A stretch of DNA of 64,000 nt from positions 13,020,001 to 13,084,000 of the forward strand of contig OZ059896.1 in assembly GCA_964057225.1 (NCBI GenBank), written 5' to 3'. This DNA is from Auanema rhodensis. Its lineage: Eukaryota; Animalia; Nematoda. The notes below the pieces were generated by a model. The model was not told the origin of the DNA. It did not search any database and worked only from the letters and a program-made list of their open reading frames with translations. Position numbers and translations under genes: made by a program. Shown piece by piece: positions 1 through 64,000 of this stretch (positions within the stretch are counted from its first letter, which is position 1; every line of letters begins with the position of its first letter).

Positions 1-420
1 TTAATTATTTCTCTTTCCATAGTCATAACCTTGTTCTGTTTTTCTGTTCGTGACAATTGGCAACAGTTTCCTATTTTCATCCCTTCTTTACTCCTTTGTT
101 ACTTCGTTTCATATCTTATAGACATGAGTCATACGGATTGAACGCAAGTTATCTCCTATTGTTAGAACGGGCTCGGCTCAACTTATGAGTACCTCCGTAC
201 CTAACAACTACCAACAGGAGATCAGCTTTTATGCTGAACAAACCCCCTGTTTTCTGAAAAAAAAAGGAACTGCTTACAAATATTCACTCTCAGATTAACT
301 TATTATTTTTATCCACCCTTCATTTTTTTCAATGTTCTTATTGTATGGCTCTTACTCATGTAACTTCTCATTTGTACTAATACCGTTTAGCCTGTAATAC
401 TGAACAATAAACCAATAAAC
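1..420 (+). mobile_element. 3' UTR and 3' end of a CR1-type LINE (subfamily A), truncated by the window start
   Basis: Collinear blocks are shared with the reverse complement of 55367-55735 (e.g. AGAACGGGCTCG, CTGAACAAA, TTTTATCCAC, CCTGT.AT...GAACAATAAACC). It ends in the 8-bp tandem tail (CAATAAAC)2 at 405-420, typical of CR1, and joins the satellite at AC|GTGTAC. Confidence 0.85.
117..239 (+). ncRNA. Putative conserved structured cis-RNA element in the LINE 3' UTR (copy A)
   Basis: Stems: GAC121-123/GTC128-130, GTT148-150/AAC237-239, ATCTCCT151-157/AGGAGAT216-222, TTGTTAG159-165/CTAACAA201-207, ACGG167-170/CCGT195-198, GCTCA176-180/TGAGT186-190, CAGC223-226/GCTG233-236. Compensatory changes are seen relative to the copy at 55606-55735. 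Confidence 0.65.
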
Positions 421-55200: not shown

Positions 55201-55605
55201 AAATTTCAAAGTCATGGTTACCATGCACCAATGTGAATACAAATTTGTTATTAGACTAAAATGGACATGAGGAATCTAATTTTGAGAACCGCATCTCTTT
55301 ATCTTTCACGTAAAGCAAGTTACATACCAAGTGCAAATCACGTGTACAATTAATTAGCATAAATTAGTCAAGGTTTATTGTTCTTTATCACAGGTTATAA
55401 CAATAGCAGTTTTGAAAAAAGAAAGTGGATAAAAGAAGTTCCTTACAATATGAACATGATTATATAAATTGATTGACATGAAAACATTAATTGTATAGAG
55501 ATAAGAATAATTATTGAATCAATTATGTCAGTAGAAAATATATATTCTAAACAAGTAAATCTATGTGTCATAGTTGTCAACCCATCCTTGATAAACAAGG
55601 GATTT

Positions 55606-55735
55606 GTTCAGTTCAAAAAATATGACCTGACCTCATTTTTACTTTTACCAGGTGCGGTGGAACTTAGAGAAAAAGTCGAGCCCGTTCTGGTAATCAGAGG
55701 TAACTATCACCAGATTCGTATGGCTAATGCCTATA
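55606..55735 (-). ncRNA. Putative conserved structured cis-RNA element in the LINE 3' UTR (copy C)
   Basis: Element-sense stems GGC/GCC, GTT/AAC, ACCTC/GAGGT, TTACCAG/CTGGTAA, CGG/CCG, ACTT/AAGT and CAG/CTG occur in the same order as in 117-239. Confidence 0.65.
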
Positions 55736-55907
55736 GAGTCCATGGTGAAGTAACATTGTAGCAAAGGGAACAAGGATGTGGTTGAAAACAAAAAATGATA
55801 CATGAAGAACATAGTTTGCATAGATATTTGTAGAAGACATATTGAAATAATAATTAGAGAACAAAATATCATAAGCAGACGAAAAACATTAATAATGAAA
55901 GTGCAAG

Positions 55908-58737
55908 CTAATCGCTAAGGAAAAGTTGAAGATGTTTGCGAAATTTGGGAGCTTTTTCAAGACTCACAATGTTTGATGGTATTGAATTCCAGAGTTCTAT
56001 GGCTCTGTACTCGATACCTCTTCTAGTTTGAGTCTTCTGGACGTTTGGAAAATCCACAGTCCATTCGTGACGCCTTAGTGAGTGTGTGAATTTTTTGAGC
56101 TTAAAAATTTTCAAAGTATTCTCTGAAATTGGTTGTTTTATTTGGTTAAAATAAAAAATTAAATCGAAAACTAGTCTTCTGAAAAATAACTTTTGCCCCC
56201 CTAACAAAGACAGTTGATCTTCATAGCTCATTTTAGATCCTGAGCGCATGAAAACTGCGCGCAGAAACTTTTTTTGAACATATTCAATCCGGTCTTTGTC
56301 TTTAGAATCTTGTGGGGACCAGATAATAGAAGCATATTCCAATATTGGTCTTATGTAAGTACAGAATAAGTTGTACATAAGAGAAGGCGATTTAGAGTAG
56401 AAACAACGTAAAATTATTTTACATTTTTTTGCTGCTTCACTTGTGATTTTGTTTATGTGATTTGAGAAGGAGAGATTGTAATCTGTGAATACTCCAAGAT
56501 CTTTGTAACAATCTACTGAAGATAGGTTAAAGTTACCAAAAGTGAAAGCGAAGTTTTCAGGATTACTAATTGGTTTATTTGACATAACCATTATTTTAGA
56601 TTTAGAGATGTTAACGGCCATCCCGTTTGAGTCGCACCATAATTTTAATTGATCAAGAGCCCGCTGTAAACTAGTAGGGTTTTTGCTGTAGAGCTTCAAA
56701 TCATCTGCATAGAGAATGGAGCTGACATCATTAGGAAAATTGGATGTTATGTCATTTATGTAAAATAAAAACAACAGAGGACCAAGAACTGTACCTTGTG
56801 GTACACCACAAGTGAGTTGTTTAGGTGGTGATAAGGAATTATTGACCATAACTGAAAAAAAACCTACCAGAGATGAAACTTTGGAGAAAGGAATGAAGTG
56901 GGCCTTGAATACCAATGGACTTGAGTTTTGAAAAAAGAGTAGAATGTTGTATAAGATCGAAGGCTTTTGAAAAGTCGATATAAGCTACAAAAACCGGAGT
57001 ATTACAGTCCAATGATGATCTGAAAGAGATGTGGCTACTCAGAATTGCAGAAACAGTGCTTCTTTTAGGAAGGAAGGCGTGTTGATTTTGAGATATGGCA
57101 CCATTGGAAATACCAAAATTAAGAAGTGGAGTACGTATTATACGTTCAAAGATTTTTGAAAGACTGGAAGTGAGTGAAATTGGGCGGTAGTTACTTGGAT
57201 TTTCAGGTCGGCCCGTTTTGAAAATGGGACGAATCCAGGCTAACTTCCAATCAGGAGGACAAGTTGAGGTAACTAACAAATTGTGAAAAATGAAAGCTAA
57301 TGGATTAGCCAGAGTAAAAGCACATTGTTTAAGAAAGTAATATGGAATACCATCCGGAGATGTGGAAACCCTGAGTGGAAGACTATGAAGAGTTTTGTAG
57401 ACCAATTCAGGTGTTATATCCATGAAATCAATGGTATGACTGGAAGAAGAAGAGACGGAAACATGAGTGTTTTCCTGAGAGACAAGAGGAGAAAGAGGAG
57501 AAACCGTGAAAACCTCGGCAAATGCTGACACTTTATCAATATCTGAAGAAACTGACACATTGTTGACAGTGAGGTTTGGAATGTCAGATGTTTTACCATT
57601 TAATCGGGCCTTACAAAAACGATAAAAAAGCTTGGAGTTTTTTAAGGCAGCAATACGCTCTTCCTCTAAAGCACATTTGATTTTTATTAGTTTGTCCAAT
57701 TTTACTGAAAGATTTTTACGGCGAATCTCGTCAGATAGATATAAAGAGCAACTTAGCCTGTTAATTTGATTTCTGAGTTTTGCAATGTTACGATCCGCTT
57801 TTTTATTTTTCCTCGGTTGTTTTTTAGGAACATAAATGTCAATGATTGAATGTAGAATAGAGATAAACTTTGAATAGGATTGGAGTGGAGTAAGAACTGA
57901 AAGTTCAGAACAGAAGTCGATGTTGACCAGTTGCCTATTGATACGTTCATAATCAGCCAAAAGGAAATTGCGGTCTGATAACATGGAGAGAGATGTGGAT
58001 TCAGCACTATGTAAATCTTGTAGATGAAAATTTTCAGATTTTGAAAGTATATGAAAGGTGATGGAAAAATGATCCGAAGCTCCAAGTGGACCAGATCGCT
58101 TGATATTGTTGACACAACGAACGTTATTTGTAATTATATAGTCAAGAATATTTTCACCTCTAGTAGGAAAATTTACTAGCTGGTTTAGACAATTGTGATT
58201 GAGAAATTGGAGTAGAATTCTACTAGAAGGAGTAGGTTGAGAACATATACCAAGATCCCAGTTTATTTTAGGGAAATTAAGATCACCAGTGAGATAGAGA
58301 GACCGATTAACTAAATGATTTTGTAGATCACAAAGATAGTTTGAGAAATCTAAGCTAGATGATGATGGAGAACGGTAACAAACAGAAAAAATAGAATTGG
58401 AAGATGTGATGAGAATATTTATAAACTGTATGGTAGATGAATTACAAGAGCAGGAAAGAAGACGAAAAGTAATATGTTTTTTGATGAAAAGTAGTACACC
58501 ACCACCCCGTGATGAACATCTATCAGCCCTGAGGATATTATAGATGTCACCTAACGGAAGAAGATTAGTGTTAAATTGGGGGTAAAGCCAGGACTCTGAT
58601 ATAGCAATTATATCAGGAGAATTGGGAGAGATGATAACTGGGAGAAGATGAAGTTTGTTGAGAATTGAGCGTGCATTGTAACAGTGAACAGAAATGTAAG
58701 TGTGGTTAGAGACGAGAACAGGTGTTGACGATAACAT
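55908..58737 (-). pseudogene. LINE ORF2 (AP endonuclease + reverse transcriptase), split by a +1 frameshift at 56855-56862; about 942 aa if repaired
   Basis: APE motifs: YNARS, ISESWL, RGGGV, CYRSP, GDLN, PTR..ILD, SDH. RT motifs: NYRPISL, QHAF, DFSKAFD, GVPQGTVLGPLLF, YADD, LGV. It also has the CR1/L2-type C-terminal RPILEYASIIWSP. The first ATG is at 58737; the ORF-track start at 58773 is TTG. Confidence 0.93.
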
Positions 58738-58741
58738 TGGA

Positions 58742-59745
58742 TCAACGAAAGGACCCGTTATTGGACAAAACAACAGAAGATGATGCAGAAGGACTACTCA
58801 TAGATCTGGTATTAGGTCCAGTTGGTTTAACTACCCGAGGCGGATTTTTTCTCCTTCTTGGGCTTATTGAATGATTTTTATCTGTTGGTACAGACACCTG
58901 CCTATTGTTAGACCGACTGGGTCTACCAGATTTACGAGGGGGGCTGGAGATGAGAGAAGAAATTGGTTTTAAGATTGAACTGCAAACGGCATCAACTACT
59001 GAAGGGGTTTCAGCTGGTTGAGTGTCCACAGTGACAGAGAGAGTGTTGATGGCATGCGAAGTAACATTGGTAGATTTACGGGGGACTTCAATAATTTTGA
59101 GATCCCGTACAAGAAAAGTCTTTTCAGTGTTATTTTCATTCTTGATTTTTGCTTCTTTTCGCAAGTTTTTCTCCAGTTCAATTTCGAAGGGGAGATAATC
59201 TCGTCGCAAAAACGTTTTTGAGAGGAAATCGAAGCATTTTGATTTATTGAATTTGATAACTTGGATAATCTTGTCACGTAAATCTACCGATGGACACGTA
59301 ATTATGAGAGGGCCAGGGGAATTAGATTTGAGAGTTGAACGTGCAATAGTAATTTGATTGCTATCGATCAAAGAAGACAAAGTGGTGTCCTGAGATTTCT
59401 CGATAATAAGTTTTAGTAACAACAGAGGTTCAGTTGGAAATTCTGTTGACTTTAATGGCACTCGAAACCAAAGGGCTCTTTTGGCACGGTAGAGGTACTT
59501 TGTCTCCTCTGATCGTAATTTTTGAAAATGACATGCTACATTGAGTGGGGAAAAAGTTGGAACACAGGTAGAGTTAAGGTTGCTAGTGGTTTGAAATGAG
59601 TTAAAAGTTTGCTCTAACTTATCTAAGCGGGATTTGAAATCCGTTTCGATAGTTTTTAAGCGAGCCTCATGCGACGTGATACTAATTTTCATACAGTTAA
59701 GCTCATTTTTTATATCATTTGACAATTTTGAAAAAGAGTTCTCGA
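58742..59745 (-). pseudogene. Second, N-terminally truncated copy of ORF1
   Basis: It is identical to 59968-61029 from LENSFSK onward and lacks the native ATG. An in-frame TAA lies just upstream of the junction. Confidence 0.85.
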
Positions 59746-59963
59746 GATATTATAGATGTCACCTAACGGAAGAAGATTAGTGTTAAATTGGGGGTAAAGC
59801 CAGGACTCTGATATAGCAATTATATCAGGAGAATTGGGAGAGATGATAACTGGGAGAAGATGAAGTTTGTTGAGAATTGAGCGTTGAGAATTGAGCGTGC
59901 ATTGTAACAGTGAACAGAAATGTAAGTGTGGTTAGAGACGAGAACAGGTGTTGACGATAACAT
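59746..59963 (-). pseudogene. Duplicated 5' stub of ORF2 (start of the endonuclease), frameshifted by the 14-bp duplication
   Basis: It matches 58534-58737 plus the 14-bp duplication. Confidence 0.85.
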
Positions 59964-59967
59964 TGGA

Positions 59968-61029
59968 TCAACGAAAGGACCCGTTATTGGACAAAACAAC
60001 AGAAGATGATGCAGAAGGACTACTCATAGATCTGGTATTAGGTCCAGTTGGTTTAACTACCCGAGGCGGATTTTTTCTCCTTCTTGGGCTTATTGAATGA
60101 TTTTTATCTGTTGGTACAGACACCTGCCTATTGTTAGACCGACTGGGTCTACCAGATTTACGAGGGGGGCTGGAGATGAGAGAAGAAATTGGTTTTAAGA
60201 TTGAACTGCAAACGGCATCAACTACTGAAGGGGTTTCAGCTGGTTGAGTGTCCACAGTGACAGAGAGAGTGTTGATGGCATGCGAAGTAACATTGGTAGA
60301 TTTACGGGGGACTTCAATAATTTTGAGATCCCGTACAAGAAAAGTCTTTTCAGTGTTATTTTCATTCTTGATTTTTGCTTCTTTTCGCAAGTTTTTCTCC
60401 AGTTCAATTTCGAAGGGGAGATAATCTCGTCGCAAAAACGTTTTTGAGAGGAAATCGAAGCATTTTGATTTATTGAATTTGATAACTTGGATAATCTTGT
60501 CACGTAAATCTACCGATGGACACGTAATTATGAGAGGGCCAGGGGAATTAGATTTGAGAGTTGAACGTGCAATAGTAATTTGATTGCTATCGATCAAAGA
60601 AGACAAAGTGGTGTCCTGAGATTTCTCGATAATAAGTTTTAGTAACAACAGAGGTTCAGTTGGAAATTCTGTTGACTTTAATGGCACTCGAAACCAAAGG
60701 GCTCTTTTGGCACGGTAGAGGTACTTTGTCTCCTCTGATCGTAATTTTTGAAAATGACATGCTACATTGAGTGGGGAAAAAGTTGGAACACAGGTAGAGT
60801 TAAGGTTGCTAGTGGTTTGAAATGAGTTAAAAGTTTGCTCTAACTTATCTAAGCGGGATTTGAAATCCGTTTCGATAGTTTTTAAGCGAGCCTCATGCGA
60901 CGTGATACTAATTTTCATACAGTTAAGCTCATTTTTTATATCATTTGACAATTTTGAAAAAGAGTTCTCGAGAGACTTTGAGAAATTTTGAAGAGCATTT
61001 GTAAGAAAATCATTAGTCACGAAAGACAT
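59968..61029 (-). CDS. LINE ORF1 protein (353 aa): coiled coil, L1-type RRM/CTD-like region, basic S/P/R-rich tail
   Basis: It starts at ATG (MSFVTND) at 61029 and has a heptad-like N-terminus. RAKRALWFRVP, PGPLIITCPSVDLRDKII and FLRRDYLPFEIELEKNLR resemble motifs in CR1/L2 ORF1s. It lies directly upstream of ORF2. Confidence 0.85.
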   Translation of the reverse strand: MSFVTNDFLTNALQNFSKSLENSFSKLSNDIKNELNCMKISITSHEARLKTIETDFKSRLDKLEQTFNSFQTTSNLNSTCVPTFSPLNVACHFQKLRSEETKYLYRAKRALWFRVPLKSTEFPTEPLLLLKLIIEKSQDTTLSSLIDSNQITIARSTLKSNSPGPLIITCPSVDLRDKIIQVIKFNKSKCFDFLSKTFLRRDYLPFEIELEKNLRKEAKIKNENNTEKTFLVRDLKIIEVPRKSTNVTSHAINTLSVTVDTQPAETPSVVDAVCSSILKPISSLISSPPRKSGRPSRSNNRQVSVPTDKNHSISPRRRKNPPRVVKPTGPNTRSMSSPSASSSVVLSNNGSFR

Positions 61030-61229
61030 ATTGAAAAACGAGGGAGTAAAAGAAGGGAAGTAAGAAAGAATAAGAATAAACACTGAAGTGGAAAATAAAA
61101 AAGAAACAAATACGAGAGAAAGAAAATAATGATAAAACTAAAATGCGATACGAAAGAGAGCGCACCTTGACAAAGCCAGTCCGACGAAAATTTCCTTGAC
61201 AGAAACGGATCCGGATCCAAACAGCGGAA

Positions 61230-61578
61230 GTCAACTGACGAGTGGGAGGTCAACTGACGAGTGGGAGGTCAACTGACGAGTGGGAGGTCAACTGACGAGT
61301 GGGAGGTCAACTGACGACTGAGGGAGGTCAACTGACGACTGAGGGAGGTCAACTGTGACGACTGAGGGAGGTCAACTGACTGAGGGAGGTCAACTGACTG
61401 AGGGAGGTCAACTGACTGAGGGAGGTCAACTGACTGAGGGAGGTCAACTGACTGAGGGAGGTCAACTGACTGAGGGAGGTCAACTGACTGAGGGAGGTCA
61501 ACTGACTGAGGGAGGTCAACTGACTGAGGGAGGTCAACTGACTGAGGGAGGTCAACTGACTGAGGGAGGTCAACTCGG
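61230..61578 (-). repeat. 5'-terminal tandem minisatellite of the LINE: 11x18 bp, 1x23 bp, 2x21 bp, 4x19 bp, plus a 10-bp partial unit
   Basis: Plus-strand units: GTCAACTGACGAGTGGGAG (61230-61305), GTCAACTGACGACTGAGGGAG (61306-61347), GTCAACTGTGACGACTGAGGGAG (61348-61370) and GTCAACTGACTGAGGGAG (61371-61568). The array lies inside the TSD. Confidence 0.95.
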
Positions 61579-64000
61579 AAATTAAAGTTCACGTAAATTT
61601 CAAAGTCATGGTTACCATGCACAAATATCAATAAAATTTTGTTCTTAGACTAATATGGACATGGGTAATCTAATTTTGAAAACCGCATTTCTTTATCTTT
61701 CACGGGAAGCGAGACATACCATGTGCACATCACGTGTACAATTAATTAGCATAAATTAAAGTTCACGTAAATTTCAAAGTCATGGTTACCATGCACCAAT
61801 ATCAATAAAACTTTGTTCTCAGACTAATATGGACATGGGTAATCTAATTTTGAAAACCGCATCTCTTTATCTTTCACGGGAAGCGAGTCACATACCATGT
61901 GCACATCACGTGTACAATTAATTAGCATAAATTAAAGTTCACGTAAATTTCAAAGTCATGGTTACCATGCACCAATATCAATAAAAATTTGTTCTTAGAT
62001 TAATATGGACATGGGGAATCTAATTTTGAAAACCGCATCTCTTTATCTTTAACGGGAAGCGAGTTATATATCATGTGCACATCACGTGTACAATTAATTC
62101 GCATAAATTAAAGTTCACGTAAATTTCAAAGTCATGGTTACCATGCACCAATATGAATACAAATTTGTTATTAGACTAATATGGACATGAGGAATCTAAT
62201 TTTGAGAACCGCATCTCTTTTATCTTTAACGGGAAGCGAGTTACATACCATGTGCACATCACGTGTACAATTAATTAGCATAAATTAAAGTTCACGTAAA
62301 GTTCAAAGTCATGGTTACCATGCACCAATATCAATAAAAATTTGTTCTTAGACTAATATGGACATGGGTAATCTATTTTTGAAAACCGCATCTCTTTATC
62401 TTTAACGGGAAGCGAGTTACATACCATGTGCACATCACGTGTACAATTAATTCGCATAAATTAAAGTTCACGTAAATTTCAAAGTCATGGTTACCATGCA
62501 CCAATATCAATAAAACTTTGTTCTCAGACTAATATGGACATGGGTAATCTAATTTTGAGAACTGCATCTCTTTATCTTTCACGTAAAGCGAGTTACATAC
62601 CAAGTGCAAATCACGTGTACAATTAATTAGCATAAATTAAAGTTCACGTAAATTTCAAAGTCATGGTTACCATGCACCAATATGAATACAAATTTGTTAT
62701 TAGACTAATATGGACATGAGGAATCTAATTTTGAGAACCGCATCTCTTTTATCTTTAACGGGAAGCGAGTTACATACCATGTGCACATCACGTGTACAAT
62801 TAATTAGCATAAATTAAAGTTCACGTAAAGTTCAAAGTCATGGTTACCATGAACCAATATCGATTAAAATTTGTTATTAGACTAATATGGACATGGGTAA
62901 TCTAATTTTGAGAACTGCATCTATTTATCTTTCACGGGAAGCGAGTTACATACCATGTGCACATCACGTGTACAATTAATTAGCATATATTAAAGTTCAC
63001 GTAAATTTCAAAGTCATGGTTACCATGCACCAATGTGAATACAAATTTGTTATTAGACTAAAATGGACATGAGGAATCTAATTTTGAGAACCGCATCTCT
63101 TTATCTTTCACGTAAAGCGAGTTACATACCAAGTGCAAATCACGTGTACAATTAATTAGCATAAATTAAAGTTCACGTAAATTTCAAAGTCATGGTTACC
63201 ATGCACCAATGTGAATACAAATTTGTTATTAGACTAAAATGGACATGAGGAATCTAATTTTGAGAACCGCATCTCTTTATCTTTCACGTAAAGCGAGTTA
63301 CATACCAAGTGCAAATCACGTGTACAATTAATTAGCATAAATTAAAGTTCACGTAAATTTCAAAGTCATGGTTACCATGCACCAATATCAATAAAATTTT
63401 GTTCTTAGACTAATATGGACATGGGTAATCTAATTTTGAAAACCGTATTTCTTTATCTTTCACGGGAAGCGAGACATACCATGTGCACATCACGTGTACA
63501 ATTAATTAGCATAAATTAAAGTTCACGTAAATTTCAAAGTCATGGTTACCATGCACCAATATCAATAAAACTTTGTTCTCAGACTAATATGGACATGGGT
63601 AATCTAATTTTGAAAACCGCATTTCTTTGTCTTTCACGGGAAGCGAGTCACATACCATGTGCACATCACGTGTACAATTAATTAGCATAAATTAAAGTTC
63701 ACGTAAAGTTCAAAGTCATGGTTACCATGAACCAATATCGATTAAAATTTGTTATTAGACTAATATGGACATGGGTAATCTAATTTTGAGAACTGCATCT
63801 ATTTATCTTTCACGGGAAGCGAGTTACATACCATGTGCACATCACGTGTACAATTAATTAGCATATATTAAAGTTCACGTAAATTTCAAAGTCATGGTTA
63901 CCATGCACCAATGTGAATACAAATTTGTTATTAGACTAAAATGGACATGAGGAATCTAATTTTGAGAACCGCATCTCTTTATCTTTCACGTAAAGCAAGT
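61579..64000 (+). repeat. 176-bp satellite array continued (about 14 monomers, runs off the window)
   Basis: It has the same monomer, orientation and variant set as 50-55 kb. Confidence 0.99.

Follow-up and report, generated by a model that had tools for sequence, protein, structure and literature searches.

What preserves a stretch of some 150 nucleotides in two LINE 3' UTRs that otherwise align poorly? The question is raised by a 64,000-nucleotide stretch of DNA from the nematode Auanema rhodensis (the window), nearly the whole of which is a 176-bp AT-rich satellite. The satellite runs at 419-55366 and 61579-63990, in 314 and 14 units, respectively, with a match of 92-93%. Two LINE pieces, here termed copy A and copy B, are embedded in it:

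Window start to 418, + strand: copy A, comprising only the last 418 nt of its element.
55367-61578, - strand: copy B, a full-length LINE of 6212 bp with satellite on both sides, a 6-bp duplication, and endonuclease and reverse transcriptase domains.

The duplicated target at the two ends of copy B, at 55361-55366 and 61579-61584, reads TAATTT in the orientation of the element. Site-specific insertion was rejected, given that copies A and B occupy differing sites and opposite orientations in the 176-bp unit. All sequences were analyzed as read.

Domain detection in ORF2 of copy B returned Exo_endo_phos, Exo_endo_phos_2, and RVT_1; this ORF2 is of the AP-endonuclease and reverse transcriptase type. 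A previous reading of the window made from its letters (the sequence-only reading) had labeled the elements CR1, a name that is borne out so far only to the extent of an ORF2 of this type and a short octamer-like tail. The reverse transcriptase domain is broken across two overlapping frames on the - strand, 55908-56915 and 56839-58773 (overlap 56839-56915), and copy B probably does not encode an intact ORF2. Two further ORFs lie upstream on the same strand, at 58742-59725 (327 aa) and 59968-61083 (371 aa), neither with a Pfam family; the 371-aa ORF gave weak matches only, under every cut-off, and the 327-aa ORF runs into the beginning of the ORF2 piece, which is AUG-less. The 5' UTR of copy B contains an 18-bp unit repeated 18.6 times (61226-61575, - strand), the unit sequence drifting gradually along the array. 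Protein searches with both pieces of this ORF2, including an exhaustive one of 1.84 billion representatives, returned no relative that exceeded 36-37% identity across most of the length. The nearest proteins, 34-37% identical, come from a mixture of animals (Meloidogyne incognita, Ancylostoma ceylanicum, Pleurobrachia, and Artemia). The LINE lineage of copy B is essentially unsampled among public protein collections.

We aligned the 3' UTRs of the two copies. In copy B, the ORF2 stop codon is at 55910-55908 and the domain of interest begins 152 nt later. The sequence-only reading had placed a conserved block at 117-239 (+) and 55606-55735 (-), and the block lies at these positions in both copies. 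It had also described the 3' UTRs as poorly alignable outside this block and the terminus, as the alignment confirms: they are gap-rich throughout except for the domain stretch, which extends over 97-240 (+) in copy A and 55755-55605 (-) in copy B and has its sole gaps in one hairpin loop, and for the last ~90 nt. The distance from the end of the domain to the 3' end of the element is 178 nt in copy A and 238 nt in copy B, close to the 180-240 nt previously estimated. Within the 117-239 block, the copies are 61% identical. Identity is unevenly spread, with 50 of 66 paired columns identical compared to 30 of 66 unpaired columns, and all 16 of the paired columns that differ are compensated or wobble-compatible. 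A coding role for the stretch was rejected because every frame has stop codons in at least one copy and none is open in both. Also rejected was the idea that the 3' UTR carries a copied satellite target, as the shared sequence amounts to 9-10-mers at most and occurs in copy B only.

Each copy was then folded singly with short flanks added, and both yielded the same four-way junction as the minimum-energy structure. Its parts are as follows:

97-240, + strand: whole domain of copy A, 144 nt.
97-100, + strand: 5' strand UGUU of the closing helix P1 in copy A, pairing with AACA at 237-240.
101-149, + strand: arm I of copy A, with ACU/AGU, CGUUU/GAACG, and the GAC/GUC hairpin; 16 pairs, six of them compensatory relative to copy B.
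151-222, + strand: arm II of copy A, with AUCUC/GAGAU, UUGUUAG/CUAACAA, CGG/CCG, and GCUC/GAGU; 19 pairs, five compensatory and one changed from G-U to A-U.
223-236, + strand: arm III of copy A, a CAGC/GCUG hairpin in which CAG/CUG is invariant and the loop is unlike that of copy B in length and sequence.
237-240, + strand: 3' strand AACA of the closing helix P1 in copy A.
241-253, + strand: single strand AAACCCCCUGUUU straight after the junction in copy A, near-invariant as AAAYCCCYUGUUU (copy B, 55592-55604, - strand).
55605-55755, - strand: whole domain of copy B, 151 nt.
55703-55751, - strand: arm I of copy B, with ACU/AGU, CACCA/UGGUG, and the GGC/GCC hairpin.
55630-55701, - strand: arm II of copy B, with ACCUC/GAGGU, UUACCAG/CUGGUAA, CGG/CCG, and ACUU/AAGU.
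55609-55629, - strand: arm III of copy B, a CAG(G)UC/GA(A)CUG hairpin.

The arms are separated by one unpaired nucleotide, and UGUU/AACA closes the junction. When 97-240 was folded without flanks, the three arms formed with a z of -4.06 relative to 200 dinucleotide shuffles; the isolated stretch of copy B gave the same three arms. Arm II holds the conserved internal loops AGAA, GCUCG, NCCN, and NAC, together with an A-rich bulge on its 3' side. An internal loop in this arm had been called invariant. The description holds for AGAACGGGCUCG, which is the same in both copies and has no further occurrence in the window; the loop nevertheless contains a conserved 3-bp helix, CGG/CCG, and one of the variant contigs described below carries a C-to-U change within GCUCG. 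The single strand that follows the junction matches copy B in 11 of 13 letters. The AACA of the closing helix could instead pair with the UGUU of this strand (241-253), a possible switch to which folding assigned a probability of at most 0.05.

This fold departs from the sequence-only reading in its topology. That reading had proposed a three-way junction of 123-130 nt closed by GUU/AAC, a helix that is invariant between the copies and has a probability of 0.00 in both once 20 extra 5' nt are included. The GUU/AAC helix also clashes with ACU/AGU, the base of a longer arm I, since AGU overlaps GUU. The longer arm adds four compensatory pairs (CGUUU/GAACG versus CACCA/UGGUG) and makes the GAC/GUC hairpin the tip of the arm, and the domain is thereby enlarged to a four-way junction of 144-151 nt. 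The compensatory differences that had been listed, namely GAC/GUC versus GGC/GCC, AUCUC/GAGAU versus ACCUC/GAGGU, UUGUUAG/CUAACAA versus UUACCAG/CUGGUAA, and GCUC/GAGU versus ACUU/AAGU, were all recovered. In the revised fold, the closing helix, CGG/CCG, and CAG/CUG are invariant between the copies, and the junction topology itself is consequently unsupported by covariation. Topology is the least secure feature of the fold model, because the closing helix is invariant and its pairing probability, 0.6-0.8 in copy A, is only about 0.1 in copy B.

The helices within the arms were evaluated by covariation. All 42 pairs of the common fold occur in both copies: 11 have changed on both sides and two on one side, the latter gaining or losing a G-U pair, and no pair is lost. 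Sliding the partners by columns in this 42-pair model left 0-2 compensatory pairs and 27-39% paired cells. The consensus energy of the full domain was -30.25, whereas column shuffles averaged -8.47 ± 2.84 (z = -7.65) and none of 400 was as low; compensatory pairs in the shuffles averaged 3.4 and never exceeded 9, compared to the 11 observed. Similar results were obtained for the 117-239 block alone. All 33 of its pairs are present in both copies, seven through compensatory change; with partners slid by 1-3 columns, 0-1 compensatory pairs remained and 26-38% of cells were paired, compared to 100% in register. Its consensus energy was -23.6 kcal/mol versus -6.85 ± 2.85, a value reached by none of 1000 column shuffles, and its seven compensatory pairs (mean 2.85) were reached in 21 of 1000; these covariation counts rest on two complete sequences, and column shuffling ignores shared ancestry. 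Another null gave copy B no part in the choice of structure, the fold being taken from copy A alone and the differences of copy B being relocated to other columns. Copy B retains 44 of the 52 pairs in the copy A-only fold, 12 of them via compensatory change. Under the null, 33.8 ± 2.5 pairs were retained (1 of 5000 replicates reaching 44) and 3.4 were compensatory (0 of 5000 reaching 12).

Exchange of LINE 3' ends is a known phenomenon. The block might accordingly have been exchanged recently between subfamilies and have no function at all, with the matched changes reflecting chance or a hitch-hiking palindrome; that two full sequences only are available, and that the flanks may just be older, leaves some room for this explanation. 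Recent exchange, however, predicts high identity, and the 117-239 block is only 61% identical. Furthermore, the differing paired columns are compensated or wobble-compatible without exception while unpaired columns are freer, the nulls are exceeded at about 1e-3 or better, and the island is kept in at least five variants (see below). We regard absence of function as distinctly unlikely. Because each substitution in a paired column is compensated or wobble-compatible, it is instead very probable, judging from the aligned copies, that the helices are held by selection and constitute a real RNA structure.

The covariation signal does not by itself identify the strand that folds, as the antisense strand folds nearly as well as the sense strand. 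The antisense alignment gave a z of -6.23 with 11 compensatory pairs, and the selected fold might on this ground form in the single-stranded first-strand cDNA while the element integrates, e.g., priming or positioning second-strand synthesis. Helix sets score on both strands, though, such that an antisense score adds nothing in itself; moreover, three G-U pairs in the copy A junction become A-C mismatches on the opposite strand, and the sense z of -7.65 is the better of the two. A cDNA structure is very unlikely on this evidence. We conclude with moderate confidence that the folded molecule is the sense RNA, given the G-U pairs of copy A, the better sense z, and the fact that the sense strand is that of the LINE transcript. 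The domain stretch was not found in any public RNA run, and its transcription is assumed.

We also searched for other diverged copies in public DNA runs. Logan contigs from four DNA runs, representing three studies and three organism labels, were aligned to 55372-56100 at 80% likeness. In all four runs, a near-identical contig spans the full 55372-56100, and the flanks are covered by this contig alone. The remaining contigs represent at least five distinct variants. Their matches, with 5-12 differences apiece, are almost confined to all or part of the following island:

55636-55766, - strand: domain island matched by the diverged contigs, in pieces at 55636-55766, 55647-55755, 55649-55706, 55649-55689, and 55674-55736.

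Short pieces of diverged contigs were in addition aligned at 55372-55413, 55437-55457, and 55488-55529. All matched pieces keep the order that they have in copy B, indicating that they derive from homologous 3' UTRs rather than from an independent repeat. Across subfamilies, it is the domain that forms the conserved island within the 3' UTR. Differences in the variants are visible only beyond about 32 letters from the ends of the pieces, and within this range the variants together have eight variable sites in 22 visible unpaired columns and four in 28 visible paired columns. Seven substitutions and a deletion are listed for the commonest variant (depth 128.6 in run X4), and with one exception these fall in unpaired columns. 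The odd one out lies at a covarying position in arm I (alignment column 44), and its partner, like those of alignment columns 63 and 65, is outside the displayed range.

The sequence-only reading had proposed a scan against Rfam, and this was run without yielding a confident family match. Rfam 15 at gathering thresholds returned no matches in the whole window. At E ≤ 10, the two 3' UTRs gave just two chance-level matches, NEAT1_1 (13.9 bits) and Afu_304 (13.3 bits), neither of which lies on the sense strand of the domain. The models R2_retro_el, hairpin, hammerhead, HDV-like, twister, pistol, hatchet, 5S, U1, and xrRNA were all without a match at this threshold, and ARAGORN detected no tRNA genes in 1-450 and 55300-61700. 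A 14-base pattern of the fixed loop occurred in 120 metagenome stretches, none of which fit the covariance model, and these occurrences are attributed to chance; a 26-base two-part pattern was absent from the prokaryote-genome and viral contig collections. In the 3' flanks of five ORF2 relatives, including the Ancylostoma ceylanicum element, no match to the model had an E below 1.6. By sequence, the domain is specific to the LINE lineage of copies A and B as far as these searches extend. The suggestion of an undescribed structured 3' UTR RNA domain shared by diverged LINEs agrees with these results, with 11-12 compensatory pairs, none broken, and no Rfam match for the domain at E ≤ 10.

Small ribozymes are typically built as multi-helix junctions in which internal loops are fixed, and the hairpin ribozyme in its natural form is a four-way junction; the LINE ribozymes known so far act at the 5' end. 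There is precedent for self-cleavage or RNA processing as the role of such a structure, as twister variants occur in Schistosoma non-LTR elements (PMC8501958). Yet no hammerhead, hairpin, HDV-like, twister, pistol, or hatchet model matched at E ≤ 10, in keeping with the misfit to the first three that had previously been judged by eye. In addition, the GUC of arm I in copy A is GCC in copy B, and cleavage would cut the coding region off from the terminal priming site. A self-cleaving ribozyme or RNA-processing signal is most unlikely on these grounds.

The priming site in question is associated with a second conserved module, located at the extreme 3' end of both elements:

333-418, + strand: terminal stem and tail AUAAACCAAUAA of copy A, holding AAUAAA; 333-348 pairs with 391-406, and 14 pairs are kept in both copies.
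55367-55456, - strand: terminal stem and tail AUAAACCUUGAC of copy B; 55456-55441 pairs with 55394-55379.

This long-range stem is conserved in all 14 pairs, none of them compensatory, and encloses about 45 variable nt. The sequence between the junction and the terminal stem is variable, and both strands of the stem are retained in diverged contigs. The stem is followed by the tail AAUAAACC(AAUAA), which contains the polyadenylation hexamer AAUAAA; copy A ends in AAUAAACC-AAUAA, about 1.6 repeat units, and copy B has one unit. By analogy, the stem and tail would be the natural counterpart of the terminal hairpin and short repeat of CR1/L2 elements (PMC4316615, PMC4176376), and the terminal stem is likely to be the classical priming or recognition site.

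How, then, might the upstream junction contribute to the element? By analogy with other non-LTR elements, we tentatively prefer a role in recognition by the element's own proteins during retrotransposition, although this is put forward as the foremost candidate rather than as a settled assignment. The fixed loops of arm II (AGAA, CGG/CCG, GCUCG, CC, and the A-rich bulge), displayed on a rigid junction, may form a binding surface for ORF2p or ORF1p. Such binding would allow the transcript to be picked in cis (cis-preference) and assembled into a particle. Placing the template for target-primed reverse transcription would then fall to the terminal stem and AAUAAACC tail. Against own-protein recognition, the conserved terminal stem could already be the recognition site of the reverse transcriptase, in which case priming would not have to involve the junction.

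The same features would also suit a host-factor element, i.e., one that recruits a cellular protein for export, exonuclease protection, translation, or stability control. A structure with fixed internal loops is compatible with any protein ligand, and the position of the domain, 178-238 nt from the 3' end and ahead of a variable spacer before the terminal stem, implies that it need not act in priming. A ligand that stays constant, as a host protein would, furthermore predicts its retention across several diverged subfamilies. Intronless or unspliced RNA is exported by means of the retroviral CTE and the mouse RTE, and flaviviral xrRNAs confer protection from exonucleases. The MPMV CTE and mouse IAP RTE are structured 3' UTR elements that serve unspliced retroelement RNA and whose fixed internal loops sit on an extended stem; they resemble the domain in architecture but have no sequence or Rfam similarity to it. 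We know of no description of CTE/RTE-type export elements in LINEs, and no export, xrRNA, or stability element in Rfam was similar at E ≤ 10. We consider a host-factor element possible but somewhat unlikely. Still less probable is a broader proposal, in which the domain is a portable RNA module of unrelated retroelements that hijacks a host pathway (export, exonuclease resistance, or evasion of small-RNA silencing) or has catalytic or RNA-guided activity. The ribozyme, cDNA-structure, and no-function explanations are less likely than recognition by either the element's own proteins or a host factor.

The preference for recognition by the element's own proteins draws on several known systems. 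R2 protein takes the RNA that encodes it as template by binding selectively to the folded 3' UTR (PMC11194090). In stringent LINEs of the L2/CR1 group, ORF2p must recognize a 3' stem-loop (PMC4176376), and amniote CR1 subfamilies retain a 3' UTR hairpin and octamer (PMC4316615). Structured 3' UTR elements of stringent LINEs are already known, and the domain is a sense-strand 3' UTR part of an autonomous non-LTR element. The 3' UTR RNAs of R2 from Bombyx, Drosophila, and birds resemble it in being multi-helix structures of a non-LTR 3' UTR that are conserved in structure more than in sequence, and R2 protein binds them selectively in choosing a template for target-primed reverse transcription (PMC11194090, PMC12222951). 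However, R2 belongs to a restriction-like-endonuclease, rDNA-specific lineage, whereas copy B has an AP-type endonuclease and sits in a satellite. The R2 RNAs are also pseudoknotted and fill most of the UTR to its end, whereas the junction described here is an island 178-238 nt from the end.

UnaL2, ZfL2-1/2, and amniote CR1 probably share with the present elements their broad group and the logic of cognate recognition by ORF2p, and a conserved terminal stem, with a tail that may be octamer-like, is found here as well. Their recognition elements, in contrast, each consist of one small hairpin at the very 3' terminus, whereas the four-armed domain of 144-151 nt lies upstream of the terminal stem and is additional to it. 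The CORE, V, Deu, and Ceph domains of SINE bodies provide a further parallel, as non-coding islands kept across diverged retroposon families with no function assigned; some derive from LINE UTRs, the LINE parts so far being 5' regions of RTE and Vingi elements (PMC5786205). They differ in being defined by sequence in SINEs without an established covarying fold, and no domain-bearing SINE was seen here.

Neither Rfam nor the literature searched describes an AP-endonuclease LINE in which a four-way junction of some 150 nt precedes the terminal stem. The domain is a candidate new RNA family, absent from Rfam, and its covariance model could be used to annotate this genome and its relatives. Should the portable-module or catalytic proposal prove true, the domain would represent a new functional RNA class instead of a lineage-specific protein-binding site. 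To our knowledge, the choice of own RNA by stringent LINEs is detailed only for R2 and for small terminal hairpins in a few fish L2 elements. The covarying junction of about 150 nt provides a defined, mutable RNA target for this question of template choice in a nematode LINE. As a structure separate from the priming stem, it would show that template choice and template positioning may occupy different RNA modules.
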